From positions 51,336,001-51,400,000 of the forward strand of contig OZ241827.1 of NCBI GenBank assembly GCA_965202585.1: a DNA stretch of 64,000 nt, given 5' to 3'. Positions 1,373 to 44,700 of the stretch are shown here, piece by piece. A program made the position numbers and the translations under genes. Below the pieces are notes generated by a model that saw nothing but the letters and a program-made list of their open reading frames with translations, was not told where the DNA came from and ran no database searches. Positions within the stretch are counted from its first letter, which is position 1; the number at the start of each line of letters is the position of its first letter. The stretch comes from Thalia democratica. Lineage: Eukaryota.

Positions 1373-2027
1373 AAGTGGAAGCAATCATTTTTCTAACTCT
1401 CTGAAAAAGAAATGTTTATGAAAGTTATTTTGGGAGACACTGCTAAAGACCATACTTGATGAAACAAGTTGCTTAATTCACACATTAATTACTAGAGCCT
1501 CGTTTACTAAAATAAAAAAAAACTGTATAGTATTTAATGTTCAGATAGATTAGCAACAATAGCATTCTTCCAGCACTACTAAGATCAAAGCTGCTGAATG
1601 TTAATTTCAGTTTATGCAAAATCATTTCATTCATACCTAGTAAGTTAGTTTTTTATGGAAAAGACTGTTGTTTTTGTTCTTGAAAATTTTCCAATATATT
1701 TTGGTAGTTACTTTTCGAAGTAATTTATTTTTGCTTTTAATTTAAGTTAATAAATCAGTCAATATTAAATAACTCTAAATCTAATTTTTTGAACTTTAAA
1801 AATTATTTAGTCGAATTTTTAAAGCTTTACTGCTATTAGTTTTTAACTGTAAATTTTTTACACTTTTTAAAATACTTAGTTGTTAAAGTTAAAAACTATG
1901 AAACATAATATCTCCTTACTACTGCTACCGTAACTAATAAAAGGCTTTTAAAAAGTACTTTTATATGTAGGTTTTATTTGACTATTCAATAAAAAAATAA
2001 TATAATGCTTTGTAAGTGAATGTAAAT

Positions 2028-2033
2028 TTTATT
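2028..2033 (-). terminator. Putative polyadenylation signal of the giant gene
   Basis: AATAAA on the minus strand about 165 nt after the stop, at the end of a slightly GC-richer UTR-like stretch; AATAAA is common by chance in this AT-rich DNA. Confidence 0.4.
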
Positions 2034-2198
2034 AGATATAATGCAACTGCGACAAATGACAGTAAAATAAGTTGTATAAAATAAGATAACAGTGTCGTAA
2101 ATGATACTAATATCACAGTGACAAGCGACCGAGCAGTTTAAAGTTATAAATGAGCAGTGGAAGAAAAATCAAAATGTCGCAGTCGTGAGTCGTAGAAT

Positions 2199-2713
2199 TT
2201 AATAATCGCCGCAACTAGAGCAGGCGCAGGACTTTATGACCGGAACGCTGATGGTGGTCTTGCTTCCGTCACCGCAAACAGCCGTCACCTCCTTCTGAGC
2301 AACCTCGCTCGGCTGGCAACAGTGGCAGTTTGACTGTAGAAAATAAAAGCTGATTAGTGTATAAACTATCAATAGTATTATATAAAATAGTTTTAGTTCA
2401 GTTAGTTTAACGGGGATCTTACAACAAAAAGGCATTTGTAAAGAGTTCTTAATAAAGAAATGATAACAATTGGGCTGTTTTAAATAAAAACTTCAAGTGG
2501 TTTATTGAAATTTAAATGTTCTAATATTTAAGTAATTTTGCGTAATCTTTTAAAGTCTACAAACTTGTATGTATGGTGGATACTGCAGCATAGTTGTGCT
2601 GGACGCGCAGCTTCCGGAGCACACGGATACTTCCTCCTCGTTCTCCGAGACGCATCCGTCAGCAGTGAAGAGTCGCTGAGTCTTCACCACTGGCTCACAG
2701 CTTTCCTTCTTAA
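2199..2713 (-). CDS. C-terminal cystine knot (CTCK), 11 Cys
   Basis: Exons 2565-2713 and 2199-2333 give [46 protein letters not shown]|[44 protein letters not shown], with the CxGxC and CxCC motifs of vWF/mucin knots. Confidence 0.93.
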
Positions 2714-5700
2714 CTGTGATGTCATATATTACTAAGACGTTTGTGTTAAACTAAAAACAGAGTGATTAATTTTACTCACAGAAATAGAAGCTAATGAAAA
2801 GGTATCTACACAAAATTTTCAAATTAAAAAAAGTAATGTTTCTTCATAAAAAAATAAAAGTTTACAAAAAGCTAACCACAAGTTGGGCAGCATTGGTCGT
2901 CAGAGTATTTAAGCTCATGTGTTTCGAAATCGCAGGCAACATCGCAGTGTTGTCGGTGGTCGACGCACGTGACAGAAGCCATTTTGTCGCAAGAACACTC
3001 CATACAGGGCCCATCGGTCCATGACGATCCATGTTTGTGAGATACGTTGTTGTATACACAGTCAGGTTCTTTTTTTAAGTGTTTATGCATGAGTTTTATG
3101 TTTAAAAAATATTTCTAAACACTTGCCTTTGTTAAAAAAAAATACCAAGAAGTATTATTTGCCAAAGGAACTTTTAAAATCGTTTTACTCATTGTTTTTA
3201 TCCACACAATATAATATTAACATTTAGATATTTGTCCAAAAAAATAAAAATAGAGAACAAAACAGTCAAACAAGTTGTAATTTTGATTAGTATATTAGTT
3301 TGAAGATTGAAAATAAAACACTAAAAAGTTGTTGTTTTTCACTTAATTAAGATATTTTACCTAAAATTGGTTTCAAACGACAGTTTCTTTCAAAGTTTTT
3401 TTAATTACTGTATATCACGAAACAAACCTTCCAGAACACAGGAGCAACAATCGTCAGAATCGGTACTCAACACGTGACCTTCAGGGCAAGCCGATATCGG
3501 ACAGAATTTACTGCAAGTTGAACTTCCATCTACGCACTTGCACATATGGCAACCGTCAACCCATTGGTTCTCCGGCTAAAATTTGGATTATGTCTTTTCA
3601 TGATTTTTAAAATTTAATAAAAAAAGATTGATTCTATTTAACAAAAAAATACAACAGTAAGAACTTATGTTTGTTAACAGATATTTTGAAGTTTTTATTA
3701 AAAATGTAAAATAGTCAAGTTGTCTTGTTTACTAGTTACAGTCATATTAGTTTGTAAACCAAGTTTGTTTCTTATATAAAAAATTAAACAAGAAAACATA
3801 CAGCTGGCTTGTTGTAGTCTACTCTATTAAAGTAGCAGTCGGTAGAAGTGGGTGGTGTGGTCCAGCTGGACGTCGGCTTCTTGGTGGTCGGCACTTGCAT
3901 GGTCGTCGTTGTCACGTTTATGAGTTGAGGCGCGCAGTAGCAGCACTTACCTGGTTGTTTTATTGCGTTTAACTATTTCGTTAGTCATAACTCTTTTTAT
4001 TAGTCAAACATTAAATTTAAATAGTAAAACTAGGAAGCTTTATAAAATTTCGAATACTTTCAGAGTTTTATTTTGTTACGAACCAAAAAAAAAGCTTGTA
4101 CATCCTTCGAGACCTAAACTGTTAAAAAATTGAAATACCTTCTTGGTTGACGAGGACTTGATCTTGTACCGAGCAGTCGCTTTCAGTTAACCTGCAGGAA
4201 TCGTACGTGCAAACTTCCTTGCTATCGACGCATTCGCAAAGCGCGCAGTCGCTCTTCCAGTACATGTCTCCCTCCTGCGAAAAAAAAAAGTATAGTTCCT
4301 GCGAAAATACAACTTAACCATAGTAAGTTTTTGTAGCTTGATTTATTTTGTTTCGTTAGCTGTCTTTCTTTTTTCAAAATCCGTGTCAATGCATGTAAAA
4401 TACTTTCAAAATATGAAAATAAGCGTGCGTCTAATGACAGAGGTGGCTTTAAATATTTTAAAACAGTTGTTTCTAATGTTTTGTAAACTTAATTAGATTA
4501 CTGCTGTCTTTGAACAATTGTCATTTACCATGTAAGTTTTATAGAGTAATAACCATTAAGTTTCTGCGAAAACGCAACAATAAAAACCAACGTTGTACGT
4601 TCTGCCCTCGTAAGTGCACTCCTTCTCGCAAGGTTCGTATTTGACGCACTTTCTCGTAACAGGGTCTTTTTCCTCTCCGTCCTCGCAAACGCACGTGTCG
4701 CACGTGTTGACCCTCGTCGATCCGCATCTTGTTGGCAGATGATCTGTGAATATCGAAACTTGTTAAAGCGATTAGGACCACCTACTAAAGCTACAAAATT
4801 AAGGTATGGTTTTATTAAATACTTTAACGGACAAACATACTTTAACATTTTTTGTAAAGTAGGAACCTGTTAAACTATTTTAAAAATAAGAAGTCTTAAA
4901 TATCTAGACTTGTTGATAAATATTTTAAAACTGAACTCTGACGAAAACAATTTTATTGAAATGTAATAAACTAACCAAAGTGCACTTGTTCGTCGCAAGT
5001 GATGGTGAACCTGCATTCTTCGGAACAAACTTCGGTGGCTGTAGTTGTTGACACTATACTCGATGTTGTTGTGATCTGAAAATTGTGGATAGACGCATTA
5101 TTTTTATCAAGAAAAAGCATTAGAAGAATGAATTACGATAAAAACTGTTTTGTTTGTTGTTACAACCTCACATCATTTTAATAAAAAAACTATAAGTTAT
5201 ATGTTTTTGTAAAATATGTTTAAGAAAGTGGAATCGCTATAGTACAAAACTACAGATTTACATTTTTTTAACTATGTTTAGTTATATTTAATAGTCTAAG
5301 TCATTATCAAATTAAACCAAGTGATCAAGTTTGTTCAAAAGTTATGAAATATCTAGAATTAAAAATGCATACATTTGCTCTTGGTGTTGAAGTAGTTGTA
5401 TCACAAGGAACAGACTTCTTCGTAATTCTACTGTCAGCATTGCAATAAACAACGTAACATTTTCCAAAGAAAGTAACTCTGTTAATTTCTTCACCTGTGA
5501 AAAAGCAGTAAAAATAGTAAGCAGATATTAAAATAAGTTAGTTAATTACAATTATAAAATAACAAACCTGGCATGTATTGGAAGTTGTTGTATTGACAGT
5601 ATTTAGTTGGCTCAGTTGTTTCTACAAATGGAGTAGAAGTTGATGATGCTGTAGTTGGGCAGTTAACCGTCTTGTTTGCAATATTGCTATCAAGATCGCA

Positions 5701-8700
5701 GTATACAAGTACACATCCAGAATTAACAACAACAATTCCAATGACATCACCTGTGATATAAAAAAATATTGCTTGTTTTTACTATAAAAATTTGCTTATG
5801 GTCATTTTGATAAAATTACCTGGTGCATAAACAAAGTTTTTCCATTCACAAACGCTTGGTGTTACTTGCCTAGGTGTAACTGTAACAACTTCTTCTGTAG
5901 TTCTTGTTTCTTCAGTTGTTGTTACCTTTTGATATTATTAAAATTATTAATAAAGTTTGCTTAAAATGTCTAACAACTATTTTGTTATTAGATTAGAATT
6001 TAAATATATAATTTAAGAAAATGTATGCTAAATAAAAGCTTGAGTAACATACTTGTTTTAATTAATGAACTTATAAACTCTTAACAAACGTTGTAAAAAG
6101 AGCCCATCTTAGCTGAAGTAAAAGTTAAAAAAGTTATTAGGATTAAATTTATTATAGGAAATACTAAATATGTACCTCAGGTGTAGGTGTAGTTGTGCAT
6201 TCAACAGTTTTGTTAACTACTTCGCTGTTTTCATCACAATAGACCATGAAACAAGTTCCGTCTGAGTTGACACTTCCAATAATTTGTCCTGAAAAGAAAA
6301 AGTTTTCAATAAAAAAATGTCTAATTAGCTTATAGTAGTTCTCTAAGATCAAACAAGTTACCTGGAGTAAACTGTAAGTGATTCCATTCGCAATGTTTTT
6401 CAACAATTTCAGTTGTTGTAACAACGAATGGTGTTGTTGTATCGTCGTTATCAGTAGAAGTTGTAGTGAAAATATCGCTAACTGTGCTTGTATCCTAAGA
6501 TTTAGAAAACGTTTGAGTAAAACTTAGTTTATGGCAAATTATTAGATTAATACGATTGTCGTATACGAATGATAAGCACTATTTCAACTTACCGGTCTTG
6601 TTGTTGATGGACAATTAACAGACTTCTTTTTGATCTCGCTATCCTTGTCGCAGTAAACAAGGAAGCAGTCTTCTCTGACGAGAATAATACCGATCATCTG
6701 ACCTGCTTCATAGACAAACTGGTTGTAGACACATTGCTTTGGTTTAGTTGTTACAATTGCTGTTGTGGAAGTTTCAATTGATGTAGTAGTTTCAACATCT
6801 ACTGGTGTTGTTGTTGTACTTACTGGTGACTCACATTGGATTTCTTTTTTGGAAATTTTGCTGTTAGAATCACAATAAACAAGGTAACATGTTCCCTGGA
6901 ATACAACTCTTCCTACTTCTTGACCTAAGATTTTGAACTTGTTAGTAATGCAAGAAACTTATCAAGAATATTGAGACGTAATCAAATAAACCTGGCATGT
7001 ATTGGAAGTTGTTGTATTGACAGTATTTAGTTGGCTCAGTTGTTTCTACAAATGGAGTAGAAGTTGATGATGCTGTAGTTGGGCAGTTAACCGTCTTGTT
7101 TGCAATATTGCTATCAAGATCGCAGTATACAAGTACACATCCAGAATCAACAACAACAATTCCAATGACATCACCTGTAATTCGAAAAAATAGATTGTTT
7201 GTCAGTTTTATATTTTGCTGATGATTCTTGTTTCTTAAATTAAATTTACCTGGTGCATAAACAAAGTTCTTCCATTCACAAACGCTTGGTGTTACTTGCC
7301 TAGGTGTAACTGTAACCACTTCTTCTGTAGTTCTTGTTTCTTCAGTTGTTGTTACCTTTTGACATTATTGAAATTATTAATAAAGTTTGCTTAAAATGTC
7401 TAACAACTATTTTTTTATTAGATTAGAAATTAAATGTATAATTTAAGAAAATGTATGCTAAATAAAAGCTTGAGTAACATACTTGTTTTAATTAATGAAC
7501 TTATAAACTCTTAACAAACGTTGTAAAAAGAGCCCATCTTAGCTGAAGTAAAAGTTAAAAAAGTTATTAGGATTAAATTTATTATAGGAAATACTAAATA
7601 TGTACCTCAGGTGTAGGTGTAGTTGTGCATTCAACAGTTTTGTTAACTACTTCGCTGTTTTCATCACAATAGACCATGAAACAAGTTCCGTCTGAGTTGA
7701 CACTTCCAATAATTTGTCCTGAAAAGAAAAAGTTTTCAATAAAAAATGTCTAATTAGCTTATTGTAATTCTCTAAGATCAAACAAGTTACCTGGAGTAAA
7801 TTGTAAGTGATTCCATTCGCAATGTTTTTCAACAATTTCAGTTGTTGTAACAACGAATGGTGTTGTTGTATCGTCGTTATCAGTAGAAGTTGTGGTGAAA
7901 ATATCGCTAACTGTGCTTGTATCCTAAGATTTAGAAAACGTTTGAGTAAAACTTAGTTTATGGCAAATTATTAGATTAATACGATTGTCGTATACGAATG
8001 ATAAGCACTATTTCAACTTACCGGTCTTGTAGTTGATGGACAATCAACAGACTTCTTTTTGATCTCGCTATCCTTGTCGCAGTAAACAAGGAAGCAGTCT
8101 TCTCTGACGAGAACAATACCGATCATCTGACCTGCTTCATAGACAAACTGGTTGTAGACACATTGCTTTGGCTTAGTTGTTACAATTGCTGTTGTGGAAG
8201 TTTCAATTGATGTAGTAGTTTCAACATCTACTGGTGTTGTTGTTGTACTTACTGGTGACTCACATTGGACTTCTTTTTTGGAAATTTTGCTGTTAGAATC
8301 ACAATAAACAAGGTAACATGTTCCCTGGAATACAACTCTTCCTACTTCTTGACCTAAGATTTTGAACTTGTTAGTAATGCAAGAAACTTATCAAGAATAT
8401 TGAGACGTAATCAAATAAACCTGGCATGTATTGGAAGTTGTTGTATTGACAGTATTTAGTTGGCTCAGTTGTTTCTACAAATGGAGTAGAAGTTGATGAT
8501 GCTGTAGTTGGGCAGTTAACCGTCTTGTTTGCAATATTGCTATCAAGATCGCAGTATACAAGTACACATCCATAATCAACAACAACAATTCCAATGACAT
8601 CACCTGTAATTCGAAAAAATAGATTGTTTGTCAGTTTTATATTTTGCTGATGATTCTTGTTTCTTAAATTAAATTTACCTGGTGCATAAACAAAGTTCTT

Positions 8701-11700
8701 CCATTCACAAACGCTTGGTGTTACTTGCCTAGGTGTAACTGTAACCACTTCTTCTGTAGTTCTTGTTTCTTCAGTTGTTGTTACCTTTTGACATTATTGA
8801 AATTATTAATAAAGTTTGCTTAAAATGTCTAACAACTATTTTTTTATTAGATTAGAAATTAAATGTATAATTTAAGAAAATGTATGCTAAATAAAAGCTT
8901 GAGTAACATACTTGTTTTAATTAATGAACTTATAAACTCTTAACAAACGTTGTAAAAAGAGCCCATCTTAGCTGAAGTAAAAGTTAAAAAAGTTATTAGG
9001 ATTAAATTTATTATAGGAAATACTAAATATGTACCTCAGGTGTAGGTGTAGTTGTGCATTCAACAGTTTTGTTAACTACTTCGCTGTTTTCATCACAATA
9101 GACCATGAAACAAGTTCCGTCTGAGTTGACACTTCCAATAATTTGTCCTGAAAAGAAAAAGTTTTCAATAAAAAAATGTCTAATTAGCTTATTGTAGTTC
9201 TCTAAGATCAAACAAGTTACCTGGAGTAAATTGTAAGTGATTCCATTCGCAATGTTTTTCAACAATTTCAGTTGTTGTAACAACGAATGGTGTTGTTGTA
9301 TCGTCGTTATCAGTAGAAGTTGTAGTGAAAATATCGCTAACTGTGCTTGTATCCTAAGATTTAGAAAACGTTTGAGTAAAACTTAGTTTATGGCAAATTA
9401 TTAGATTAATACGATTGTCGTATACGAATGATAAGCACTATTTCAACTTACCGGTCTTGTTGTTGATGGACAATCAACAGACTTCTTTTTGATCTCGCTA
9501 TCCTTGTCGCAGTAAACAAGGAAGCAGTCTTCTCTGACGAGAACAATACCGATCATCTGACCTGCTTCATAGACAAACTGGTTGTAGACACATTGCTTTG
9601 GTTTAGTTGTTACAATTGCTGTTGTGGAAGTTTCAATTGATGTAGTAGTTTCAACATCTACTGGTGTTGTTGTTGTACTTACTGGTGACTCACATTGGAC
9701 TTCTTTTTTGGAAATTTTGCTGTTAGAATCACAATAAACAAGGTAACATGTTCCCTGGAATACAACTCTTCCTACTTCTTGACCTAAGATTTTGAACTTG
9801 TTAGTAATGCAAGAAACTTATCAAGAATATTGAGACGTAATCAAATAAACCTGGCATGTATTGGAAGTTGTTGTATTGACAGTATTTAGTTGGCTCAGTT
9901 GTTTCTACAAATGGAGTAGAAGTTGATGATGCTGTAGTTGGGCAGTTAACCGTCTTGTTTGCAATATTGCTATCAAGATCGCAGTATACAAGTACACATC
10001 CAGAATCAACAACAACAATTCCAATGACATCACCTGTAATTCGAAAAAATAGATTGTTTGTCAGTTTTATATTTTGCTGATGATTCTTGTTTCTTAAATT
10101 AAATTTACCTGGTGCATAAACAAAGTTCTTCCATTCACAAACGCTTGGTGTTACTTGCCTAGGTGTAACTGTAACCACTTCTTCTGTAGTTCTTGTTTCT
10201 TCAGTTGTTGTTACCTTTTGACATTATTGAAATTATTAATAAAGTTTGCTTAAAATGTCTAACAACTATTTTTTTATTAGATTAGAAATTAAATGTATAA
10301 TTTAAGAAAATGTATGCTAAATAAAAGCTTGAGTAACATACTTGTTTTAATTAATGAACTTATAAACTCTTAACAAACGTTGTAAAAAGAGCCCATCTTA
10401 GCTGAAGTAAAAGTTAAAAAAGTTATTAGGATTAAATTTATTATAGGAAATACTAAATATGTACCTCAGGTGTAGGTGTAGTTGTGCATTCAACAGTTTT
10501 GTTAACTACTTCGCTGTTTTCATCACAATAGACCATGAAACAAGTTCCGTCTGAGTTGACACTTCCAATAATTTGTCCTGAAAAGAAAAAGTTTTCAATA
10601 AAAAATGTCTAATTAGCTTATTGTAATTCTCTAAGATCAAACAAGTTACCTGGAGTAAATTGTAAGTGATTCCATTCGCAATGTTTTTCAACAATTTCAG
10701 TTGTTGTAACAACGAATGGTGTTGTTGTATCGTCGTTATCAGTAGAAGTTGTAGTGAAAATATCGCTAACTGTGCTTGTATCCTAAGATTTAGAAAACGT
10801 TTGAGTAAAACTTAGTTTATGGCAAATTATTAGATTAATACGATTGTCGTATACGAATGATAAGCACTATTTCAACTTACCGGTCTTGTTGTTGATGGAC
10901 AATTAACAGACTTCTTTTTGATCTCGCTATCCTTGTCGCAGTAAACAAGGAAGCAGTCTTCTCTGACGAGAACAATACCGATCATCTGACCTGCTTCATA
11001 GACAAACTGGTTGTAGACACATTGCTTTGGTTTAGTTGTTACAATTGCTGTTGTGGAAGTTTCAATTGATGTAGTAGTTTCAACATCTACTGGTGTTGTT
11101 GTTGTACTTACTGGTGACTCACATTGGACTTCTTTTTTGGAAATTTTGCTGTTAGAATCACAATAAACAAGGTAACATGTTCCCTGGAATACAACTCTTC
11201 CTACTTCTTGACCTAAGATTTTGAACTTGTTAGTAATGCAAGAAACTTATCAAGAATATTGAGACATAACTAAATAAACCTGGCATGTATTGGAAGTTGT
11301 TGTATTGACAGTATTTAGTTGGCTCAGTTGTTTCTACAAATGGAGTAGAAGTTGATGATGCTGTAGTTGGGCAGTTAACCGTCTTGTTTGCAATATTGCT
11401 ATCAAGATCGCAGTATACAAGTACACATCCAGAATCAACAACAACAATTCCAATGACATCACCTGTAATTCAAAAAAATATTGCTTGTTTTTACTATAAA
11501 ATTTGCTTATAAGTCTTGTTTTTAATAAAATTACCTGGTGCATAAACAAAGTTCTTCCATTCACAAACGCTTGGTGTTACTTGTCTTGGTGTAACTGTAA
11601 CCACTTCTTCTGTAGTTCTTGTTTCTTCAGTTGTTGTTACCTTTTGACATTATTTAATTAATTAATAAAGTTTGCTTAAAATGTCTAACAACTATTTTGT

Positions 11701-14700
11701 TATTAGAGTAGAATTAAAAATTTAACTTAAGAAATTGTAAGCTACTAAAAAGCTTGAGTAATTTATTGGTCTAGTTAATGAACCTTTAAGCCCTTTAAGA
11801 GAAGTTTTAACAAAAGACAACCTTCGCTAAAGAAAAACTTTAATCGGATTTTGAATTAAAATATTTATTTAATAATATATCTTATGTACCTCAGGTTGAG
11901 TTGTAGATGTGCATGCAACAGTTTTGTTAACAATCTCGCTGTTTTCATCACAGTATACCATGAAACAAGTTCCGTCTGAGTTGACACTTCCAATAATTTG
12001 TCCTGAAAAGAAAAAGTTTTGACTAAAAAAGTGTCTAATTAGGTTATTGTAGTTCTCTAAGATCAAACAAGTTACCTGGAGTAAATTGTAAGTGATTCCA
12101 TTCGCAATGTTTTTCAACAATTTCAGTTGTTGTAACAACAAATGGTGTTGTTGTATCGTCGTTATCGTCAGGTGTTGTAGTGAAAATATCAGTAACTGGG
12201 TTTGTGTCCTTTATTTTTTAAATAATTTTTAGCTATTTATCGAGCAGAGGTATGAAATAGTTTCATATAAATTAAATTTTCATAGAGTTTAAAGTTTAAC
12301 TCACTGGTCTTGTTGTTGATGGACAATCAACGGACTTCTTTTTGATCTCGCTATCCTTGTCGCAATAAACAAGGAAGCAATCTTCTCTGACGAGAACAAT
12401 ACCGATCATCTGACCTGCTTCATAGACAAACTGGTTGTAGACACATTGTTTTGGCTTAGTTGTTACAATTGCTGTTGTGGAAGTTTCAATTGATGTAGTA
12501 GTTTCAACATCTACTGGTGTTGTTGTTGTACTTACTGGTGACTCACATTGGACTTCTTTTTTGGAAATTTTGCTGTTAGAATCACAATAAACAAGGTAAC
12601 ATGTTCCCTGGAATACAACTCTTCCTACTTCTTGACCTAAGATTTTGAACTTGTTAGTAATGCAAGAAACTTATCAAGAATATTGAGACGTAATTAAATA
12701 AACCTGGCATGTATTGAAAGTTGTTGTATTGACAATATTTAGTTGGCTCAGTTGTTTCTACAAATGGAGTAGAAGTTGATGATGCTGTAGTTGGGCAGTT
12801 AACTGTCTTGTTTGCAATATTGCTATCAAGATCGCAGTATACAAGTACACATCCAGAATCAACAACAACAATTCCAATGACATCACCTGTAATTCAAAAA
12901 AATATTGCTTGTTTTTACTATAAAATTAGCTTATAAGTCTTGTTTTTAATAAAATTACCTGGTGCATAAACAAAGTTCTTCCATTCACAAACGCTTGGTG
13001 TTACTTGTCTTGGTGTAACTGTAACAACTTCTTTTGTTGTTCTTGTTTCTTCAGTTGTTGTCACCTTTTAAAAATTATGAATTAATTGTCAGTTCTAAAA
13101 ATAAATGCAAGCTAGAAGTATGTTTTTGAGAAAACTCACTTTAACACATGAAATAGACAACTTCAAAAATACATAGGTGTAAATTAAGCTTTATTTAAGT
13201 TTTATTTTTAGTTTTTCTGTCTTGATATTGTGAAACTGGTGTTTCTAAATAATTTTCCAAAATTTTTTAAACTGTTTCACCTCAACCGTTAAAGTTGATA
13301 TTTTTTATGGTATTTTAGATTGAAAAAGCACGAATTTGGTCAAAAAATGTATCATTTAATGCATTACCTTAGGTTGAGTTGTAGTTGTTGTGCAGTCAAC
13401 AGTTTTGTTAACAATTTCGCTGTTTTCATTACAATATACCATGAAACAAGTTCCGTCCGAACTAATTTTTCCGATCAATTGACCTACATTAATTTGAAAT
13501 ACTTAGTTCCACTTAAAAAAAACAATAAAATATGACGTTTTTATCTGTACCTGGTTTAAATTGTAAGTGATTCCATTCGCAATTCTTTTCAGTAATCTCG
13601 GTCGTGCTTGTTTCAACTGTAGTTGTTTCGTTGAAGTTGTTTTTCGTAGTAAAACCGGTTGTTACTGTTGTTGAATCCTAGACAAAAGAATTTTTACATA
13701 AAGAATTGCAAGGTTGTTAGTTATTCTTTCAAAACTATTTTAAAAAACTGAGTAAAAAAGAGCTTTTAAGTAAAAGTCTTACAGGATTGATTGTAGTTGG
13801 GCAAGCAACGGACTTCTTTCTGATCTGGCTTTGCTTATCGCAATAAACAAGGAAACAGTTTTCTCGGAAGGCAACTATTCCAATCATTTGACCTGTACAG
13901 TACAAAATACTTGTTTAGTTTTACGTCATACACAAAAGTTATAAAGTAGAAGTATATTTAGTCCTTTTCAAGCCTACTTTTTTTTTGACTATTTACGTTT
14001 TAAGACAAACAAAGTTCTAAAGTGAGATAAACTTTATAATTAAACCAATCTCATAAACTTTAACGTTTATTAGAGAGTAATGTACTTATTGATATCAAAT
14101 AGTTAAGTTGTTTTTTTCAAAAATAGTAAAATAAATTGCTTGTTTTACCTGGCTCATAGTCGAAGTTTTTGTACTGACATTTTTCATTAGAAATTCCCGT
14201 TGTAGTTGTCTGTTAAAAAAGTAATATGTATTTGTTTTACTTTTGTTTACTTAAAATTAGCAGCTGTTAAAAACTTATAAACCGAAGTCTTAAAAATAAA
14301 GCAACTAAACTAACCGGCTCTGGTAACTCAGTTGGGCAGGTGTATTTTTCCTTGACAATGTTAAGCTGATCGTTGCAGTAAACTCGGTAACATACGCCGT
14401 CGAACGCCGACGACCCAATTACTTCGCCTGTTTGTTTTCCCATGTTAGATTGAAAAAAGAAACTTACTCAAAATGGTAGTTAAAAATATAAAATCAACCT
14501 TTGGATAAAAAACTCATACCTGGCCTGTATTTGAAGTTGTTGTACCAGCAAGCCATTTCTTCGGTCGTTGAAACTGGTTTCGGTTGTGTTGTGCTTTCAG
14601 TTACTTTTTGTGTTGTCTGTAAAAGACTTGAATTCAAAAGTTGTTAAGTTTTTTCAATAGTTTAAGCTGCATGCTGCAGTTAAAGTAAACGGTTAAGACA

Positions 14701-32700: not shown

Positions 32701-35700
32701 TAAAAAACTACCATTTCTGAACAAAAATATTACCTTGAGTAAACTGTAAGTGATTCCATTCGCAATGTTTTTCAACAATTTCAGTTGTTGTAACAACGAT
32801 TGGTGTTGTTGTATCAACGTTATCGTCAGGTGTTGTAGTGAAAATATCAGTAACTGGGTTTGTGTCCTAATTTTTTTAAATAATTTTTGGTTAATTTTCA
32901 AGCATAGATATGAAATAGTTTAATATAAATTTAATTTTCATAGAGTTTAAAGTTTAACTGACTGGTCTTGTTGTTGATGGACAATCAACGGACTTCTTTT
33001 TGATCTCGCTATCCTTGTTGCAATAAACAAGGAAGCAGTCTTCTCTGACGAGAACAATACCGATCATCTGACCTGCTTCATAGACAAACTGGTTGTAGAC
33101 ACATTGCTTTGGTTTAGTTGTTACAATTGGTGTAGTAGTGTCAATATCTACTGGTCTAGTAGTTTCATCATCTACTGGTGTTGTAATAGTACTTACTGGT
33201 GATTCACATTGGATTTCTTTTTTGGAAATTTTGCTGTTAGAATCACAATAAACAAGGTAACATGTTCCCTGGAATACAACTCTTCCTACTTCTTGACCTA
33301 AGATTTTGAACTTGTTAGTAATGCAAGAAACTTATCAAGATTATTAACACCTAATTAAATAAACCTGGCATGTATTGGAAGTTGTTGTATTGACAATATT
33401 TAGTTGGCTCAGTTGTTTCTACAAATGGAGTAGAAGTTGTTGATGCTGTAGTTGGGCAGTTAACTGTCTTGTTTGCAATATTGCTATCAAGATCGCAGTA
33501 TACAAGTACACATCCAGACTCAACAACAACAATTCCAATGACATCACCTGTAATTCGAAAAAATAGATTTTTTGTCAGTTTAATATTTTGCTGGGGATTC
33601 TTGTTTCTTAAAATAAAACTACCTGGTGCATAAACGAAGTTCTTCCATTCACAAACGCTCGGTGTTACTTGTCTTGGTGTAACTGTGACAACTTCTTCAG
33701 TAGTTGTAGTTCCAGTTGTAGTTACGACCTCTTCAGAAGTAACCTTTTAAATATTAAAATATTTACTTATAAGGTATTTACGACAAGCAAATTTAGAATA
33801 AAGTTAAGAAAAACTATAAATAAAAACATTATTTGAACAGCTTGATTTTTGTGCTCTATAATGTAGTCTAGTTTAAGTAAATAAATCATAATTGTTTAAT
33901 TTGTGAAGTTAGACTCGAATAAATATATATTTTTTTATTAATGTTTATAATCTATACCTCAGGTGTAAGTGTAGTAGTTGTGCATTCAACAGTTTTGTTA
34001 ACTACTTCGCTATTTTCATCACAATATATCATGAAACAAGTTCCGTCTGAGTTGACAGTTCCGATAATTTGTCCTGAAAAGTTGTTTGTTTATAAAATAA
34101 AACTATAAAATATAAAGACTATAACTTAAGAAAAAAAAATATTACCTGGAGTAAACTGTAAGTGATTCCATTCGCAATGTTTTTCAACAATTTCAGTTGT
34201 TGTAACAACGAATGGTGTTGTTGTATCGTCGTTATCGTCAGGTGATGTAGTGAAAATATCAGTAACTGGGTTTGTGTCCTAATTTTTTAAAATTAATTTT
34301 TAGTTAATTTTCAAGCGTAGATATATAATAGTTTAATATAAATAAAATTTTTATAGAGTTTAAAGTTTAACTGACTGGTCTTGTTGTTGATGGACAATCA
34401 ACGGACTTCTTTTTGATCTCGCTATCCTTGTTGCAATAAACAAGGAAGCAGTCTTCTCTGACGAGAACAATACCGATCATCTGACCTGCTTCATAGACAA
34501 ACTGGTTGTAGACACATTGCTTTGGTTTAGTTGTTACAATTGGTGTAGTAGTGTCAATATCTACTGGTCTAGTAGTTTCATCATCTACTGGTGTTGTAAT
34601 AGTACTTACTGGTGATTCACATTGGATTTCTTTTTTGGAAATTTTGCTGTTAGAATCACAATAAACAAGGTAACATGTTCCCTGGAATACAACTCTTCCT
34701 ACTTCTTGACCTAAGATTTTGAACTTGTTAGTAATGCAAGAAACTTATCAAGATTATTAACACCTAATTAAATAAACCTGGCATGTATTGGAAGTTGTTG
34801 TATTGACAATATTTAGTTGGCTCAGTTGTTTCTACAAATGGAGTAGAAGTTGATGATGCTGTAGTTGGGCAGTTAACTGTCTTGTTTGCAATATTGCTAT
34901 CAAGATCGCAGTATACAAGTACACATCCAGACTCAACAACAACAATTCCAATGACATCACCTGTAATTCGAAAAAATTGATTGTTTGTCAGTTTTATATT
35001 TTGCTGATGATTCTTGTTTCTTAAATAAATTTACCTGGTGCATAAATGAAGTTCTTCCATTCACAAACGCTCGGTGTTACTTGTCTTGGTGTAACTGTAC
35101 CAACTTCTTCAGTAGTTGTAGTTCCAGTTGTAGTTACGACCTCTTCAGAAGTAACCTTTTAAAGATATTAGATAAAATACTTAGCTTGTAGAAATATTTA
35201 CAATATAAATATTTAGATATTAGTTTCAAATAGAAACTGTTATCAAAAAATATTTGAAATGCTTATTTCTTACTTTAGATCCGTAGTCTAATGTTTTTCT
35301 ATCAAAAACAGATGAAAAGTTACACTAGATTGTGTATTAATTTGACTTAAATGAAAATAGTCTGTACCTCAGGTGTAGGTGTAGTTGTGCATTTCACAGT
35401 TTTGTTAACTACTTCACTGTTTTCATCACAATAGACCATGAAACAAGTTCCGTCTGAGTTGACAGTTCCGATAATTTGTCCTGAAAACAAAGTATTTAAA
35501 CTAAACTAAAAGTTTAAAACATAAAATATAAATAATTATAATTTCTGAACAAAAATATTACCTGGAGTAAATTGTAAGTGATTCCATTCGCAATGTTTTT
35601 CAACAATTTCAGTTGTTGTAACAACGAATGCTGTTGTTGTATCATCGTTATCGTCAGGTGTTGTAGTGAAAATATCAGTAACTGGGTTGGTGTCCTTTAT

Positions 35701-38700
35701 TTTTTAAATAATTTTTAGCTATTTATCGAGCAGAGGTATGAAATAGTTTAATACAAATTAAATTTTCATAGAGTTAAAAGTTTAACTCACCGGTCTTGTT
35801 GTTGATGGACAATCAACGGACTTCTTTTTGATCTCGCTATCCTTGTCGCAGTAAACAAGGAAGCAGTCTTCTCTGACGAGAACAATACCGATCATCTGAC
35901 CTGCTTCATAGACAAACTGGTTATAGACACATTGCTTGGGTTTAGTTGTTACAATTGCTGTTGTAGTAGTGTCAACATCTACTGGTGTTGTAGTATCTAC
36001 TGGTTTTTCACATTCAACAACTTTTTTGACAATTTTGCTGTTTGTATCACAAAAGACTACGTAACATGTTCCTTTGAACACAACTTTTCCTACCTCTTGA
36101 CCTGTTTCATTAAAAACACTAGTTTAACCTGAAGCAGTTAGTGTAGAAAGCTTACAATTGTAATAAATTATTTAATCATATAACTTTATTGGTTAATTAT
36201 TTAAAAAGTTGTAGTCATTTAGTTAACCTGGCAAGTATTCGTAGTTGTTGTATTTGCAGCGTTTTACGGATGGTGTTGACGTAACAATGTTTGTAGTTGA
36301 TACTAATGGTTCTGTCAAAGCTGTTGTCATTTTCATAATTTTTTTTTATGTTCTTTTTTCAAAGTTACGTAAAAAAGAAATCTACAGTCTCATAAAAAGT
36401 TGAAAAAGTCAGTGACGTATTTACTAACATTTTCAAATATGTATTTACTTTAAACCAAAAAGCTACACAAATAAACTTCAAAACTATACTCACCAGCAGT
36501 GGTCGGGCAAGAGACAGTCACGTTGTAAATCTTTCCTTCTTCGTCGCAACTGAGGCGGTAACAAACTCCATTTCCAATCATCAGCCCAATGTTACTTCCT
36601 GTTGCAATTATTTTAATAAAAAAATTCCCGAAGTAAAACAAAAATATATTTAAAACTATTTTTTCTGCTTCACAGTTTTTTAGTTTTCAAAAAAAAAATT
36701 CTACCGGCAACGTAGACGAAGTCGTTGTACTTGCAGTACGGGAGGAGCTCAGTCGTGGTCGTTTCGTTCTTTGTGACGTCATCAGTGGTCGTGACCGCCG
36801 AGCTCGTCGTGTCGATGACGACGGTCGTTGTAACGTCACAGTTGGCCTCGTCGCTGTTGTCTGCGCAATCGTTTGAACCGTCGCATCTTGTAATTTAAAA
36901 TGTATGAATATTTAAACTTTAACTCTACTAGCACACAGCAAATAAAAACTTCAACCTTTGATAAAAACTATAAAAGTTATGCTTAGGTTAAATAAGAAAA
37001 GCTTGCAGGTATTTTTATAATAGTTTAGAATCATTAAAGTTCAAAAAGAGCAATAAAGATATTTTTAGCACTAGATTATTACATTAGTTATTGAAGCTTT
37101 ATTCAAATACATACATTGACTGCAGTTTTTCTTTAAAACAATACTGAATTTTTTCATCAATTAAATAAACTTACAGCCACTCAGGTGGTATGCACTTGTC
37201 ATCGCCACAAACAAACCATCCTTCACTGCATTTCTCTGTTGTTGGTTCACCTAAAAGAAAAATTTGCATTTAAAAGATCAGCTTCAAAGTTTAAACTTTA
37301 TTCTTTACAGTACTCTGTAATACATTTGTTGAGTAAAGATAGTTTTGTGACTTGTAACATAAAAAAATTTAACTTGTGAATAAAACTAGAGATGCAAATT
37401 TATTCTTTTATTTAAAAGTGTCTAACTTGTTTTGGTGGTTGTCATGTAAACCGGGGCGCAGGTGCCGCAGCACGTTCCGGTCACCGGCTTGGCAACGGAT
37501 CCCGGCGGACAGGGCGGACACTTGGTGACGCTGCATGTGACCGTCAGCTGGTCCGTGCATTTGCATCTGGTGCATTCGTCCTCGTTCCAAGTTGAGTTAA
37601 CCTGCAAAAGTTTCAATGCAAGTTAATAAAAGTGTTTAAGATAACTTTTTTTTTTGTGAAAACTATGACAACTCACAGGAACAAAAGAGCTGTCCTGCAA
37701 CTTGCACTTGCCGATTGGCTGGCAGCTGCAGCAAACCCCGTCGTCCGCGTTGTCATTGACAACCTCGTATCCGGGCTCGCAGTCGAGGAAGCAGTGTTCG
37801 CTGCACTTCGTGGTGCCCTCCTCCGTGCATTTGCACAACTGACACTCGCCTTCTTGCCACTTGTCCGATGGCTGCTCGAGTAAGTTGAAAATAGTTAACA
37901 TTGGTACAAGTTAGTATTTTGATTGTTTTTTGCAAAAGCAGTTTGTTGATGCTTGATTGAGAGCGTAGCAAAGAACTCTACGCACAAAACACCGCAAGTA
38001 AAATAAAAATGTCCATTAAAACTACTTTTTTATTTAACCTTTACCAAAACAAGATGTTTACAAGTACTTATAAACCATTTTTGAAAAGAAAACACTAAGT
38101 CTTTACCGTTAACTTATCCAAAATAGTTTAAAATGTCGTAGTAAACATTATGCAAAAAAATAATTAAAAAAATAAAAATATGTACATGTTGGTTGCATTC
38201 GCGTACAGCTGCTGTTGTGGTTGTCATGGTTACAGGAGTTGTAGTTGCAGGGCACCCCTTTTCGTCAGATGCATCGACGCAATCAGCTCTGCCGTCGCAT
38301 AACCAGTCGAGCGGAATGCAAATATCGCCACATTGGTGCTCTGAAGGGCATTTCTTTTCTGTAAAAGAAACAGTTTGCTTAAACATTGGCAATTTAAACA
38401 TAGTTTCAGTAGCGTTTATTAGACTTAAAAACTAAAGTTTTATTAACAATATAAAGATGAATAGTTAATGAATTATCAACTAGTTTTATTTATCATGTCA
38501 AAATAAACTAAAACGGAATGTTATCATATTTAGAAAAAATAATAGTAAAAATTAGAAAGAAGGTATTGTTTGTTTTATTACAACTCTAGCTAACCGCAGA
38601 CAGACGATCTTAGATGAATAGTAAACAAGTTATTGATAAGTTTTGTTCTAAGAGTGAAAAGTTGTACAAAAAGTCTTCACAGTTAAAACTTCTTAATAAT

Positions 38701-41700
38701 ACAACTCAAACCGCAGACGGAGCAGCAGACGTTTTCTTTCTGTACGAGCTGGTAGCCGTCCTGGCAGCTGGTGGCAGGGCACAATGTTTTCAGGCACTCG
38801 GTGGCGCCCTGTTCGTTCTTGCAAGTGCAGTTCTCGCAGGCATTCGGGTTCCAACTCGATCCAACGGTGAGACACCTGGAAAATTTGAAGTTTATAGTTT
38901 AATGTTATTGATGTTGTCAGAATTGTTGACTTAAGTATCATGCCAACAAAACTTTTAATAACCACATACCAAATAGAAAAATGCTGAATTTAACTTCTAC
39001 AAAGTAATATAAAACATTAAACTTTTTCAATTAAATTTCTTCACAAAGTACTTAGTATAAAGTTAATAATTCTTAGGCAAAGCTTTATAGAACTTTTTTG
39101 AAATTAAGACAATATAATACAAGTACGAAACAAACTCTAATCCGACGATGCAACCGGGACATCTGGGTTTTGGGGTGCTGGTCGTCTGAGGGGTGGTGAC
39201 GTCATCACAAATATCAGTACAGATGACCTCATTCTTCATGCATTGACAAGACGAACATTCCGTTTCATTCCACATACCTCCGTTTGGATATCTGTAATAC
39301 GGGAGTATTAAAAAATTATTAAGTAGCTTGTTGTTTTTAGTAAAACTTTTTGATATCTAGAAAGTTATAGGTAATAGTAAATTTTTTTAAACTGGCTTAC
39401 CTAACACCATTAACAACGCAAGATGGAGACATCGTAGTTGTGAGTGGAATACTTGTAAATTCAGAAACTGTTGTTGTCTATAAAACAAAAGTAGTTGAAG
39501 TTGGTTTTTAAGAAATTAGGAAAACCTTAGGAATATTTGTCTTTTCAAATTTAAACAGGAAAATACTTGAAATGGAAGATAACAGTATAAAATGTACATA
39601 TTATTGCAATTCTATGAAAGTTTAAAAATAAAAAACTCTTAGTTCAAGCAAATTAAATAATTACAGTTTCAGTTGCGTTACAATCTACTGTCTTCTTTAC
39701 AATTTTGCTGTTAGAATCACAATAAACAACGTAGCAAGTTCCCTTGAATACAACTTTTCCTACTTCTTCACCTAAAAAATAAAATCATTAATAATGACAT
39801 TGTTAAGTTAAGACATCAAACTACCATCATCAGAAATGTATATACCTGACATGTATTGGAAGTTGTTGTATTGACAATATTTAGTTGGCTCAGTTGTTTC
39901 TACTGATGGAGTAGAAGTTGATGATGCTGTAGTTGGGCAGTTAACCGTCTTGTTTGCAATATTGCTATCAAGATCGCAGTATACAAGTACACATCCAGAC
40001 TCAACAACAACAATTCCAATGACATCACCTGTTGTTTTAGAAATTGTATAAATACTTATCATAATGCGTTAAACAAAAGACCAAATTAGCTCATTACCTG
40101 GTGCATAAACAAAGTTCTTCCATTCACAAACACTTGGTGTTACTTGTCTTGGTGTAACTGTAACAACTTCTTCTGTTGTTCTTGTTGCTTCAGTTGTGGT
40201 TACAAATTCTTCTGAAGTTACCTTAAAGGTTTACAGTATTAAAGTTTTTGTCTTTTTTTATTTCTTACATATCAAATAACATTTACCTCAGGTGTAGGTG
40301 TAGTTGTGCATCCAATAGTTTTGTTAACAATTTCGCTGTTTTCATCGCAATATACCATAAAACAAGTTCCGTCTGAGCTAACTTTTCCGACGATTTGACC
40401 TAAAAAATAAGGTAGTTAGTTTGCATACATTCAAAAATAATATTTAAACTATTTCAAAATAAAAGACCTGGTGTAAACTGTAAGTGATTCCATTCGCAAT
40501 GTTTTTCAACAATTTCAGTTGTTGTAACAACGATTGGTGTTGTTGTATCAACGTTATTGTCAGGTGATGTAGTGAAAATATCAGTAACTGTGGTTGTATC
40601 CTAATGGTTTAATGGAGTTTTAGATAAAAGCTCATAAGGTTTTATAAACGAAAACATTATTTTCACTTACTGGTCTTGTAGTTGAAGGACAGTCAACGGA
40701 CTTCTTTTTGATCTCGCTATCCTTGTCGCAATAAACAAGTAAGCAGTCTTCTCTGACGAGAACAATACCGATCATCTGACCTGCTTCGTAGACAAACTGG
40801 TTGTAGACACATTGTTTTGGTTTAGTTGTGACAATTGGTGTAGTAGTGTCAATATCTACTGGTGTAGTAGTATCTACTGGCGTTGAAACTGGGGTCTGTT
40901 TGTTTATTTTTAAATAAGTGTGCATTCTCAAAAAGCTTTTAACATATAAATAAATCTTAAACTTACATTTTCACATTCAACTGTTTTTTTAACAATTTTG
41001 CTGTCAGAATCACAATAAACAACGTAGCATGTTCCTTGGAATACAACTCTTCCTACTTCTTGACCTAAGATTTTAGAATCGTTAGCAATGCAACAAACTT
41101 ATCAATAATATTAACACCTAATCTAATAAACCTGGCATGTATTGGAAGTTGTTGTATTGACAGTATTTAGTTGGCTCAGTTGTTTCTACAAATGGAGTAG
41201 AAGTTGATGATGCTGTAGTTGGGCAGTTAACCGTCTTGTTTGCAATATTGCTATCAAGATCGCAGTATACAAGTACACATCCAGAATCAACAACAACAAT
41301 TCCAATGACATCACCTGTAATTCAAAAAAATATTGCTTGTTTTTACTATAAAATTAGCTTATAAGTCTTGTTTTTAATAAAATTACCTGGTGCATAAACA
41401 AAGTTCTTCCATTCACAAACGCTCGGTGTTACTTGTCTTGGTGTAACTGTATCAACTTCTTCTGTAGTTGTACTTCCAATTGTAGTTACGACTTCTTCAG
41501 AAGTTACCTGTTTATAAATACACAATAAAATATCAAAATTGAAAAATTCTACATGAACAAATAAAACTGTTAGAGAGTTGTTAATAATATTAACAGCAAT
41601 GTTTTTAGTTTGTTTAACTTATATCGTCATAGAAATTGTAAAAAAAAACTTTTTAAACTTTTCAAATAGTTTTAGCCTATTGATTGAACTGTTTCTTTTT

Positions 41701-44700
41701 GTCAATCTAAATATTAAATTTATATTGTTTATTAACAAATTTTTATAATTTATAAAAATTATTTGTTTAGGTTTTAAAATATGCAAAAATTCTATCTTGA
41801 AAAAATAACTATATCGAACATGCTATAAGCATACTAATAAGTAATTCTGTATTGTATTATCAAACACTTTATACACCTCAGGTGTATTTGTAGTTATACA
41901 CTGAACAGTTTTGTTAACTACTTCGCTGTTTTCATCACAATATACCATGAAACAAGTTCCGTCTGAGTTGACAGTTCCGATAATTTGTCCTGGAAATAAG
42001 GTTATAAATTTCATTATAGTTATAAGTTATAAAAAATATCCTTTCCAAATAAAACCATTACCTGGTGTAAATTGTAAGTGATTCCATTCGCACTGCTTTT
42101 CAACAATTTCAGTTGTTGTAACAACGATTGGTGTTGTTGTATCGACGTTGTCATTAGGTGTTGTTTTAAAAATATCAGTAATTGTGGTTGTGTCCTAAGA
42201 TTTTGATAAAGTTTTAGTAGAAATTTATAAAAGACTAAAATATTCCTTTTATATAGCTTTATTTTACAAGTGAGAAACCCAAATCAACTTACCGGTCTAG
42301 TTGTTGAAGGACAATCAACGGACTTCTTTTTGATCTCGCTATCCTTGTCGCAATAAACAAGGAAGCAGTCTTCTCTGACGAGAACAATACCGATCATCTG
42401 ACCTGCTTCATAGACAAACTGGTTGTAGACACATTGCTTTGGTTTAGTTGTAAGTATTAAAGTAGTTGTATCAATATCTTCTGGCGTTGTAGTTGAAAAC
42501 GGTGTCTGTTAATTTTATGAAGCGTGTAAGAATAGTACAGACTTTTGTTTAAAACAAGCATTGAAATTAATTGCAGTTCAAACCGTAATTGGCTCCTCAC
42601 ATTCAATTGTTTTTTTGACAATTTTGCTGTTAGAATCACAGTAAACAACGTAGCACTTTCCTTGGAACACAACTTTTCCTACTTCTTGACCTGAAAGTTT
42701 ATGTTGGTTAAACTTTTATAAATAAAAAGCCTTAATATTTTTAAAAAGCAAACAATTTTTAATTAACCTGGTTTGAACAAGCGTCCATCGTACTGACAGA
42801 ACTCAACACCAGGGGTCGTAGTTCGTGGGGTTGTAGAGAAAGGTGTTGTGGAAAAAGGTGTTGTTGTAAAATTATATGGTTCTGCAGTTTTATTTTTACT
42901 TATTACTAATGTAACACAATTTATACTTTACTGGTTGAAGAAGTATTCATTTTAAAGTTAGCTTTTGGATTTGTTAAAACTAACGTGTCGTGGTGTCTAT
43001 AGCGTCACAATAGCAGCAGCCGCTATCGTCGTACTTCATCAGCATTCCCTCTCTGCACTGATCGATCGTGCAGTAAGTCGTACATTTCATCTTACCGTTG
43101 ACACAATTGCACTTTTCACAGCTTCCAACTGCTCTTTCTGCAAAAATAAAGATGGCTTAAATTAATACATGTAAAGATTAAGTTTTTTTTGTTAAAATTT
43201 AAATTATAAACTACAATTATGACCAAAAGTTAAATTGTTAAAAAGTTTATTACTTAACAATTGTTTCACGCCTGAGCGATGATCACAAGTAAAAAAGTAA
43301 ATTATTAAATTAAATTATAAACTACTAAAAATTTTTCGAGCCAAAGTTTGCTGTAACTTATAAATTACATACTGTCACTTTTTGTTTTTTTCTAGAACTA
43401 TCTACCAAGCATTTTTAAAGCTCATAACTATTAAGTTTTGTCAACATTTTCAAAACAAACCCATTGTAGCGCATCCGCATTGGCTGACGTCAACGCATTC
43501 ACCTGACTCCTCGTCTCTAACTTTTCCCGACTTGCACTGACAACAGTCTTCTGTTGATGACGTCACAGTCAAGTTGCAAGCTTCTCCGTTGCGCATCATT
43601 GAGCACGTCGCCTCGCAACCGCAAACTCCAAATTCTTCGTCTAAAAAGAGGATATCAGTATGTTTTTTAATTTTTATATTGAAGTCTAGCAGGTCGAGTA
43701 GAACTGTATTATTTCTTATTGTTTTTTTGTACTAACTTTTATGAAGACATTTATGCAACAAATATAAGCTTTTAGAGATAAATTTTATTTTATTAAGCAC
43801 AGTTTTTGTTTTTAAGTAATACTGTATATGTTCAACAAAGAATATTTAGCCTACATTAAAACATAATAAAAATAATATTCTGCAAAATTTTCTCAAACAA
43901 ACCTTCATTGCAAATGGGGCTAGTCGCAGTAGTTTGGGGCTTTGGTGTGACAGTTGTAACTTCAGGGACGCAAGTCGGACAGCACTGGCCTGCAACACTC
44001 GCTTCGACTAAACCCTCTCCGCACGTCACCGTTCCACACATTATGACGTCACAATGAATTTCGTTGTTGAAGCAAGAACACGTGGTACAGTCGTCCTTTT
44101 TCCAAGAGCTTCCAGCCTTTATGAAATTTGTTTTAACCAGTGTAACTATTTATTTAAATATATCTGTTAGTCTATCTTATTTACAAGTATTTTTTTGTTG
44201 CTGTTAATTTTAATCCTAATGTATTCATATATGAACAAAAGCATTTGGAATCTAAACAAAAAGGTTAGGTAAAAATTATATTTATAGATGAATTTAGTTT
44301 AAAACGGCTGGTATGTTTAATTAGTGTAAAACAAAAACTTTAGTACTATACGATAATTAAATGATAGATGCGTGATTTTAGCCTATAAATACATAATTGT
44401 TATACTATATAAATATTTAACACCATGGAAAAGAAAAATTTAGAAAGATTAATATTGCAAACCTCGCGAATAATGCCTCTGTTGTCCCTGCAAGTGCAGT
44501 CGTAAGCCTCAATGCAGGTTCCTTGATACAGGATCTTGTTGGGCGGGCATTCGCATCCCTCAGTGCATTCCGAAGGTTCCACGCATTCTGACACGTCTGA
44601 CTGGCAAACTTTCGGACAAGATGCGCACTGAACAGGCACCATGTTCGACGGGCACACTGTTACAAAGCGGCATGTTGATATTTGAGACGAATAAAAAAAC

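Follow-up and report, generated by a model that had tools for sequence, protein, structure and literature searches.

An exon array of 85 four-cysteine modules, predicted to fold like fibronectin type I domains, in a probable mucin-type gene of the salp Thalia democratica

A stretch of 64,000 nucleotides from the genome of the salp Thalia democratica (GenBank assembly GCA_965202585.1, contig OZ241827.1, positions 51,336,001 to 51,400,000 of the forward strand) was analysed; the whole stretch is called the window, and all positions are given within it. Its minus strand encodes 85 copies of a small four-cysteine module, which are strung on Thr-rich linkers and grouped in three exon arrays. With a probability of about 0.7, the arrays form the central part of one large multi-exon minus-strand gene, on the order of 9,000 codons, whose product is a secreted protein of the gel-forming mucin or von Willebrand factor (VWF) type that polymerises through disulfides and carries fibronectin type I (FN1)-like beads, likely a structural mucus. 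This reading rests on the splicing and conservation of the arrays, on the predicted fold and the relatives of the module, and on the domain frame in which the arrays are set.

Exon arrays, splicing and transcription

A regular-expression scan of the six-frame translation located all 85 modules on the minus strand, between 42798 and 5403. A stricter motif scan of the six frames returned 84 second halves, and a looser pattern returned 85, each paired with a first half. Every copy spans 41 amino acids (aa) from the first to the last cysteine, and the second and third cysteines are spaced C-x4-C in 85/85 modules. Four subtypes, QEVG, QMIG, DVIG and QIIG (20, 20, 20 and 18 copies, with 7 divergent copies in addition), share 41–51% pairwise identity and follow one another in a fixed order, which yields a spliced unit of 4 × 41 + 20 + 34 + 40 + 38 = 296 aa. 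The 82 spacers measured are free of cysteine, 17–40 aa long and 2,615 aa in total. They contain 35% Thr, 13% Val, 11% Pro, 9% Glu, 7% Ser and 6% Asp, and Thr, Ser and Pro together account for 54%. Inside the modules, 42 N-x-S/T sequons were found, chiefly in the QIIG and DVIG types, and N-x-T is conserved in two subtypes. Together, the three arrays encode approximately 6,100 residues.

A preliminary description of the window had counted the same 9, 50 and 26 modules in the three arrays by hand, and had proposed four subtypes per unit, a 296-aa unit, Thr/Pro/Glu/Asp-rich spacers of about 20–40 aa and two sequon-bearing modules per unit, all of which the measurements reproduce. Its module size of about 42 aa is corrected to 41 aa. 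Its consensus is exact for 57 of the 85 modules but is missed at one constrained position by 21 and at 2–5 positions by the remainder.

No long open reading frame (ORF) crosses the array region in the ORF list because the feature is a minus-strand exon array. In 65 modules, a phase-1 intron interrupts the coding sequence after Pro-Gly and splits the Gly codon; its ends are GT..AG in 65/65 cases, and its length is mostly 67–81 nt, with a maximum of 256 nt. The array is therefore an array of exons, organised in genomic units of approximately 1.41–1.43 kb, a period that exceeds the limit of Tandem Repeats Finder, which reported nothing. Linker introns were predicted with splice-site matrices trained on the intra-module introns and gave linkers of 20, 34, 40 and 38 aa. 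In the complete five-exon unit (Table 1), the first exon carries the first half of DVIG. The second carries the second half of DVIG, the 20-aa linker and the first half of QEVG, and the third carries the second half of QEVG, the 34-aa linker and the whole of QMIG. A linker and the first half of QIIG form the fourth exon, and the second half of QIIG with the linker that leads to the next unit forms the fifth.

Nineteen copies of the QMIG type (e.g., 23230-23108) have no intra-module intron. The sole divergent QMIG copy (14179-13801, at the head of array 3) carries a 256-nt intron at the standard position, which is confirmed by RNA contigs. This distribution suggests that the QMIG intron was lost before the unit was amplified.

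The window stretch is present in marine metagenomes and metatranscriptomes. Over 13300-19200, contigs of two marine metatranscriptome runs skip exactly the predicted introns. The junctions comprise intra-module introns (13481→13549, 13890→14147 and 14426→14519) and independently predicted linker introns (14209→14315 and 14616→14778), and the skipped stretches end in CT..AC on the plus strand, which corresponds to GT..AG on the minus strand. In the same contigs, the Cys-rich exons that separate array 2 from array 3 are joined to one another. DNA contigs of two studies span 13300-19200 and contain none of these joints. The gene is therefore real, transcribed and spliced as modelled. Many exon positions of this region read differently in the RNA contigs than in the window, and most of the changes are transitions (T>C, A>G). 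These differences are common to both RNA runs of one sample and absent from the DNA runs; the plankton RNA therefore derives from a slightly different population or a sister species rather than from the sequenced individual.

The genomic units multiplied by tandem duplication. Those of array 2 are 93–100% identical across the whole 1.41 kb, and those of array 3 are 98–100% identical apart from a divergent first unit. Between different arrays, unit identity falls in the range of 79–85%. When array 2 is compared with array 3, identity is 97% for the DNA that encodes modules, 85% for that of the linkers and 61% for introns. This gradient rules out a chance pattern and shows that purifying selection acts strongly on the beads and less so on the linkers. 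A four-unit block of approximately 5.64 kb at 30832-25192 recurs at 25191-19552, with three unit pairs approximately 100% identical and the fourth 97% identical; the repeat points to a duplication or conversion of very recent date or, alternatively, to a possible assembly error in the exact copy number. In the transcript of a relative (P0043, from a marine metatranscriptome catalogue), neither the set of four subtypes nor their order differs, and the sequons sit at identical places; the four-subtype unit therefore predates the local amplification. When the whole 802-Mb genome was searched with two profiles, 106 of 106 and 82 of 82 matches fell inside the window; within this genome, no other gene has the module. 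A search for the GH6 domain, which is specific to tunicates, matched neither this genome nor the controls and so carries no information on the lineage.

Fold and relatives of the module

The unsplit QMIG-type module was modelled by AlphaFold2 with a 77-row alignment and a mean predicted local distance difference test score (pLDDT) of 96.9. The predicted strands (residues 2-5, 8-11, 15-21, 24-30 and 36-41) form a two-strand hairpin and a three-strand sheet. In a Foldseek search against the PDB, the VWC domain of collagen IIA and FnI pairs of fibronectin lead the list, with no match at E ≤ 0.001. Since Foldseek E-values are not significant for approximately 45 residues, the Z scores of VIA-align and the coherence of the match list were relied upon. 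VIA-align superimposed 40–45 of the 45 residues with Z of 4–5.1 and a root mean square deviation of 1.6–2.8 Å. Its matches comprise FnI modules of fibronectin, factor XII and tPA, the VWC domain of NEL, E3 of MUC2, E3 and E' of VWF, MUC5B and FCGBP, and the Z scores to E3 and E' are 4.4–4.6. Among Swiss-Prot models, chicken MUC5B 1208-1251 ranks first (template modelling score 0.70), followed by KCP, otogelin-like and the tPA finger. Chordate mucin clusters are on top of the structure matches in the ESM Atlas, and a feature search of the Atlas with one exon gave weak leads (score 0.78).

The four-module unit of a relative was also modelled, with an alignment that is shallow for three of its beads. 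All four beads show the five-strand pattern of the single module, with 10-residue blocks at pLDDT 84–97, and the linkers have no secondary structure at pLDDT 35–56; the predicted template modelling score of the whole is 0.33. Each module is thus predicted with high confidence to be an independent FN1-like β bead, and the linkers to be disordered. The preliminary description had proposed an FN1-like module resembling the first VWC subdomain and a beads-on-a-string rod. Both proposals are borne out, by the predicted structure of the single module, whose top structural matches are FnI, E and VWC modules, and by that of the relative's unit, in which the beads are predicted to fold separately.

On four spliced modules and one exon, no Pfam model reached its threshold. 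The best match, Fn1_2 (PF23003), scored E 0.1 and 13.2 bits against a cut-off of 27 over profile positions 2-39 of 70, with two flanking residues included. Close relatives scored E 0.35–1.1 against the same model, and a distant homologue (P0010) passes it at 79.5 bits. In the whole genome, Fn1_2 has no match. The four spliced modules and the exon do not match Pfam fn1 (PF00039) at E ≤ 10, nor do 77 modules at E ≤ 1. VWC (PF00093) has no match on the window modules, which have four cysteines and lack the second subdomain; true VWC modules occur elsewhere in the gene. TILa, the E module (PF12714), likewise has no match on the modules, in which its C-x2-C-x-C motif is absent.

A profile search of 1.84 billion representative proteins matched 42 proteins. 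The close relatives among them are fragments from marine metatranscriptomes and metagenomes, from one fragmented NCBI assembly (GCA_024449705.1) and from one public run. The distant proteins have the same four-cysteine pattern, a Tyr-x-Pro-Gly turn and Thr/Pro-rich linkers. A protein of the chiton Liolophura sinensis (XP_064614883) contains 18 modules and passes Pfam Fn1_2 (2e-22) and DUF7210 (2e-26), and a mucin-like protein of the annelid Owenia fusiformis belongs to the module family and also carries a mucin CysD domain. With a linker-free 41-position profile of the window modules, and at whole-library size, the chiton and Owenia proteins score 4e-11 and 7e-7. An alignment of 77 modules has four invariant cysteines and a near-invariant Tyr. 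Comparison of window-lineage with distant modules by hhalign covers all 41 columns at a probability of 98.3% and E 1.6e-14, an E-value that refers to one comparison with a distant set chosen by means of the window's own profile. Xenopus and shark matches (P0016 and P0040) are six-cysteine variants and were kept out of the module alignment, and P0029 was rejected as a low-complexity false positive. A word-index search with the chiton protein found one further homologue, and a circularly permuted module profile matched no PDB sequence.

On this sequence evidence, the module has diverged strongly and forms a branch, restricted to its lineage, of an FN1-like four-cysteine family with poor annotation, which Pfam covers through Fn1_2 and DUF7210 alone. 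Because homologous bead-and-linker modules occur in other phyla, it is a divergent branch of an existing family and not a wholly new one. The earlier suggestion of a possibly new domain family therefore holds in part: the profile work found no strong full-length Pfam match for the window modules, but they are homologous to the chiton and annelid modules, and the chiton protein passes Fn1_2 and DUF7210.

In the chiton gene (CM072731.1, at 501-4509 of the examined stretch), the 18 modules fall into two length classes of 35–36 aa and 42 aa, and residues 1-1011 are encoded by a single exon. An intron position shared with the chiton gene was considered and rejected, as all 18 chiton modules lie in one exon; the intra-bead intron is therefore specific to the window lineage. 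The automatic name of the chiton protein, 'kielin/chordin-like', looks misleading, given that Pfam assigns Fn1_2 and DUF7210 and not VWC.

Compared with the FnI modules of fibronectin, tPA and factor XII (Pfam fn1), the window module is alike in its approximately 41–45 residues, its four cysteines, the predicted hairpin on a three-strand sheet and a conserved aromatic residue in the second strand. However, it has C-x4-C where FnI has C-x-C, it lacks the Trp after the Gly turn (Ile-Gly), and its context is mucin-like rather than that of fibronectin or a protease. With the Fn1_2/DUF7210 (PF23843) protein of the chiton, it shares the four-cysteine pattern, the Tyr-x-Pro-Gly turn and the arrangement of beads on Thr/Pro linkers, whereas the Trp-Cys-Tyr-Gly and Trp-Asp-Asn-Phe motifs are missing from it. 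Most window beads are split by an intron and the chiton beads are not, and Pfam finds no VWD/CTCK frame in the chiton protein. The E modules (TILa) of VWF and mucins would have the same small FN1-like fold, to judge from the model, and they also stand beside D assemblies in the same protein class. They differ in their C-x2-C-x-C motif and six cysteines.

A profile of the joint family matches human MUC5AC construct sequences in the PDB at E 2.5e-7. The matched stretch has four cysteines with C-x4-C spacing and directly follows the E3-like part of the D3 assembly; in the model library it is represented by chicken MUC5B 1208-1251. According to the two papers on the MUC5AC structures, E3 and everything after TIL3 are too flexible in the cryo-EM maps to be modelled (PMC11933400, PMC11912381); there is therefore no experimental structure of this four-cysteine stretch. 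As judged from the profile match, a homologue of the bead probably occurs once in human MUC5AC. The preliminary description had placed four-cysteine C-x4-C modules before D4 in MUC2 and MUC5AC; a C-x4-C stretch does exist in MUC5AC, but it lies right after D3/E3 and not before D4. Both the E modules and the MUC5AC stretch occur as single copies in vertebrate mucins, in contrast with the arrays described here.

The protein frame and alternative readings

The domain frame was read from Pfam scans of 30 stop-free exon pieces, and a full gene model was built within the arrays only (Table 1). As in gel-forming mucins and VWF, three VWD-C8-TIL assemblies lie N-terminally, and VWC modules and a cystine knot lie C-terminally. 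The pieces that match the three assemblies fall between 53361 and 45391, and the three VWD, three C8 and several TIL domains together extend from about 53361 to 43453. This frame on both sides agrees with the earlier view that the modules stand in place of a mucin Pro/Thr/Ser-rich (PTS) domain. An orthologous C-terminal fragment (P0011) contains two modules, VWC and Cys_knot. Pfam EGF matches the piece at 52942-53361, and the candidate signal-peptide exon sits approximately 1.8 kb upstream of the first EGF-like exon.

Table 1. Features of the gene in the window, in the order of the minus strand, followed by two reference elements of the arrays.
Feature	Position	Strand	Content and basis
Candidate first exon with signal peptide	56391..56459	(-)	Met, hydrophobic core, Ala-x-Ala-like end; hydrophobicity scan of ATG-started frames; putative, no RNA link to the gene
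Four to five EGF-like exons, N-terminus	53574..54605	(-)	Cys patterns in stop-free frames
Three VWD-C8-TIL assemblies (D1, D2, D'D3-like)	45917..53361	(-)	Pfam VWD 1e-8, 2.5e-5, 2.4e-15; C8 2.8e-13, 4.1e-15, 8.8e-21; TIL 4.8e-8
TIL and VWC modules that follow the third D assembly and precede array 1	42983..45633	(-)	Pfam TIL 1.8e-12, 2.1e-5, 1.7e-4; VWC 8.6e-11, 1.9e-3
Array 1	39680..42798	(-)	9 four-Cys modules and Thr-rich linkers
Inter-array segment 1: two LDL-receptor class A modules and exons resembling VWC	36839..39356	(-)	Pfam Ldl_recept_a 4.6e-9, VWC 4.6e-7
Array 2	19094..36735	(-)	50 modules; mostly twelve five-exon units of 1.41 kb (mutual identity in the text)
Inter-array segment 2: Cys-rich, weakly VWC-like exons	15226..18878	(-)	Joined in metatranscriptome contigs; Pfam VWC weak, E 0.023; no VWD
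Array 3	5403..15046	(-)	26 modules; first four (15046-13392) divergent, their introns confirmed by RNA contigs; others in 1.43-kb units (identity in the text)
C-terminal VWC modules (about four) and cystine knot (CTCK)	2202..5132	(-)	Pfam VWC 2.3e-6, 1.9e-4, 3.2e-4; Cys_knot 1.8e-5 (VWC/Cys_knot at 4313-2202)
Complete 296-aa unit, five exons	22370..23780	(-)	Three-frame reading and splice model
Unsplit QMIG-type module, 41 aa	23108..23230	(-)	Folded with two flanking residues per side

Two intron-poor genes for trypsin-like serine proteases adjoin the region (61685-62578 and 62801-63601, both on the minus strand). Their G+C content is 0.47, compared with approximately 0.3 around them, and their nearest relatives are environmental sequences with Pfam Trypsin, the best at 88% identity.

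In a protein of this type, the disulfides would pair C1 with C3 and C2 with C4, by analogy with FN1, and the Thr/Pro linkers would be O-glycosylated. The cystine knot may dimerise the tails and the D3-type assembly may join the heads, so that long polymers would arise as they do in mucins and VWF. As rigid, disulfide-stapled pieces, the beads would segment and stiffen the glycosylated rod. FnI modules bind partners by strand addition at exposed β edges. The approximately 85 repeated β-edge surfaces per chain could, by analogy, mediate non-covalent cross-links or particle adhesion, a role similar to that of CysD. The product would most likely serve as structural mucus, and possibly in the pharyngeal feeding net.

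The CysD domains of MUC2, MUC5AC and MUC5B appear comparable in that they are small disulfide-rich globules punctuating an O-glycosylated rod in a VWD...CTCK polymer. However, they are unrelated in fold and sequence, with approximately 100 aa, 10 cysteines and a WxxW motif; they number 2–9 copies compared with 85, and the PTS stretches of those mucins measure hundreds of residues compared with 17–40. The frog integumentary mucins FIM-A.1 and FIM-B.1 are mosaics in which cysteine-rich modules alternate with short O-glycosylated repeats, and the C-terminus of FIM-B.1 is VWF-like. Their modules are of the trefoil or sushi type, not FN1-like, and their copy numbers are far below 85.

Several points weigh against a polymerising protein of the mucin/VWF type. 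A fourth VWD (D4) was not found in the scanned pieces between or downstream of the arrays, and no long PTS domain was found, Thr-rich linkers of 17–40 aa each being present instead; the protein is therefore not a textbook gel-forming mucin. We infer the O-glycosylation, the disulfide pattern and the polymerisation only. The E-values and Z scores of the structure searches are no more than modest, which is normal for a domain of 45 residues. A profile of the window lineage alone does not match MUC5AC, and the link to MUC5AC therefore runs through intermediates. The expression evidence consists of contigs from mixed plankton RNA, which is uninformative on level or tissue. In addition, the 100%-identical 5.6-kb blocks in array 2 expose the exact copy number to assembly error.

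The same frame of VWD...CTCK could belong to a different extracellular fibre or coat (an SCO-spondin/Reissner-fibre-like, tunic, egg-coat or adhesive protein) rather than to feeding mucus. The presence of LDLa, EGF, TIL and VWC with VWD and CTCK recalls SCO-spondin, and tunicates possess many multi-VWD proteins (PMC4948705). This explanation is nevertheless unlikely, given that the linkers are mucin-like (54% Thr+Ser+Pro), that the best structural and sequence relatives of the bead are found in mucins, and that no thrombospondin type 1 repeat was detected in the 30 exon pieces scanned, a set in which not every small exon is included. It is highly improbable that the protein is a soluble, kielin/chordin-like regulator of BMP/TGF-β-type ligands, in which each bead would be a minimal VWC ligand site. 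The second subdomain of VWC is absent from the beads, as are six of its ten cysteines, and Pfam VWC does not match them; 85 copies on mucin-like linkers in a VWD/CTCK polymer frame are not the architecture of a regulator. VWC first subdomains do appear among the structural matches, and the nearest named distant homologue is annotated as 'kielin/chordin-like', but that name stems from automatic annotation. It is scarcely credible, finally, that the array is a pseudogene in decay or that the assembly inflated a much shorter repeat, as the four-unit block repeated at approximately 100% identity in array 2 might suggest. Open frames and four cysteines are retained in 85/85 modules and GT..AG in 65/65 intra-module introns, and between arrays the exons are far better conserved than the introns; moreover, RNA contigs are spliced, and the unique parts recur in DNA contigs that come from two separate studies.

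The bead in mucins and in salp biology

Beyond the reading as a mucin/VWF-type polymer, a wider history of the bead is possible, albeit doubtful. The bead may represent, in salps, an old metazoan 'mucin bead' domain that is essentially unannotated and that would have stood as an FN1-like four-cysteine module behind D3 in ancestral gel-forming mucins. A single copy would have been kept in vertebrate MUC5AC/MUC5B, and salps (85 copies), chitons and annelids would each have multiplied the module on Thr/Pro linkers independently. The salp feeding net might then have the bead as its principal repeat for bearing load or binding particles.

The gene does not represent a new kind of system. It would provide an alternative to the PTS-plus-CysD design, with a rod made almost half of rigid FN1-like beads and half of very short, presumably glycosylated spacers. 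One small fold unites the unannotated post-D3 stretch of MUC5AC, Pfam Fn1_2 and DUF7210, and the bead-on-linker proteins of molluscs and annelids, and could justify the definition of a family. A mucous net allows salps to filter a large share of the picoplankton in the ocean. To our knowledge, the protein make-up of the salp feeding net is undescribed, and a literature search found no paper on its protein composition. The gene is a concrete, transcribed candidate for the polymer of the net or of mucus, and its peptides would be easy to seek by proteomics.

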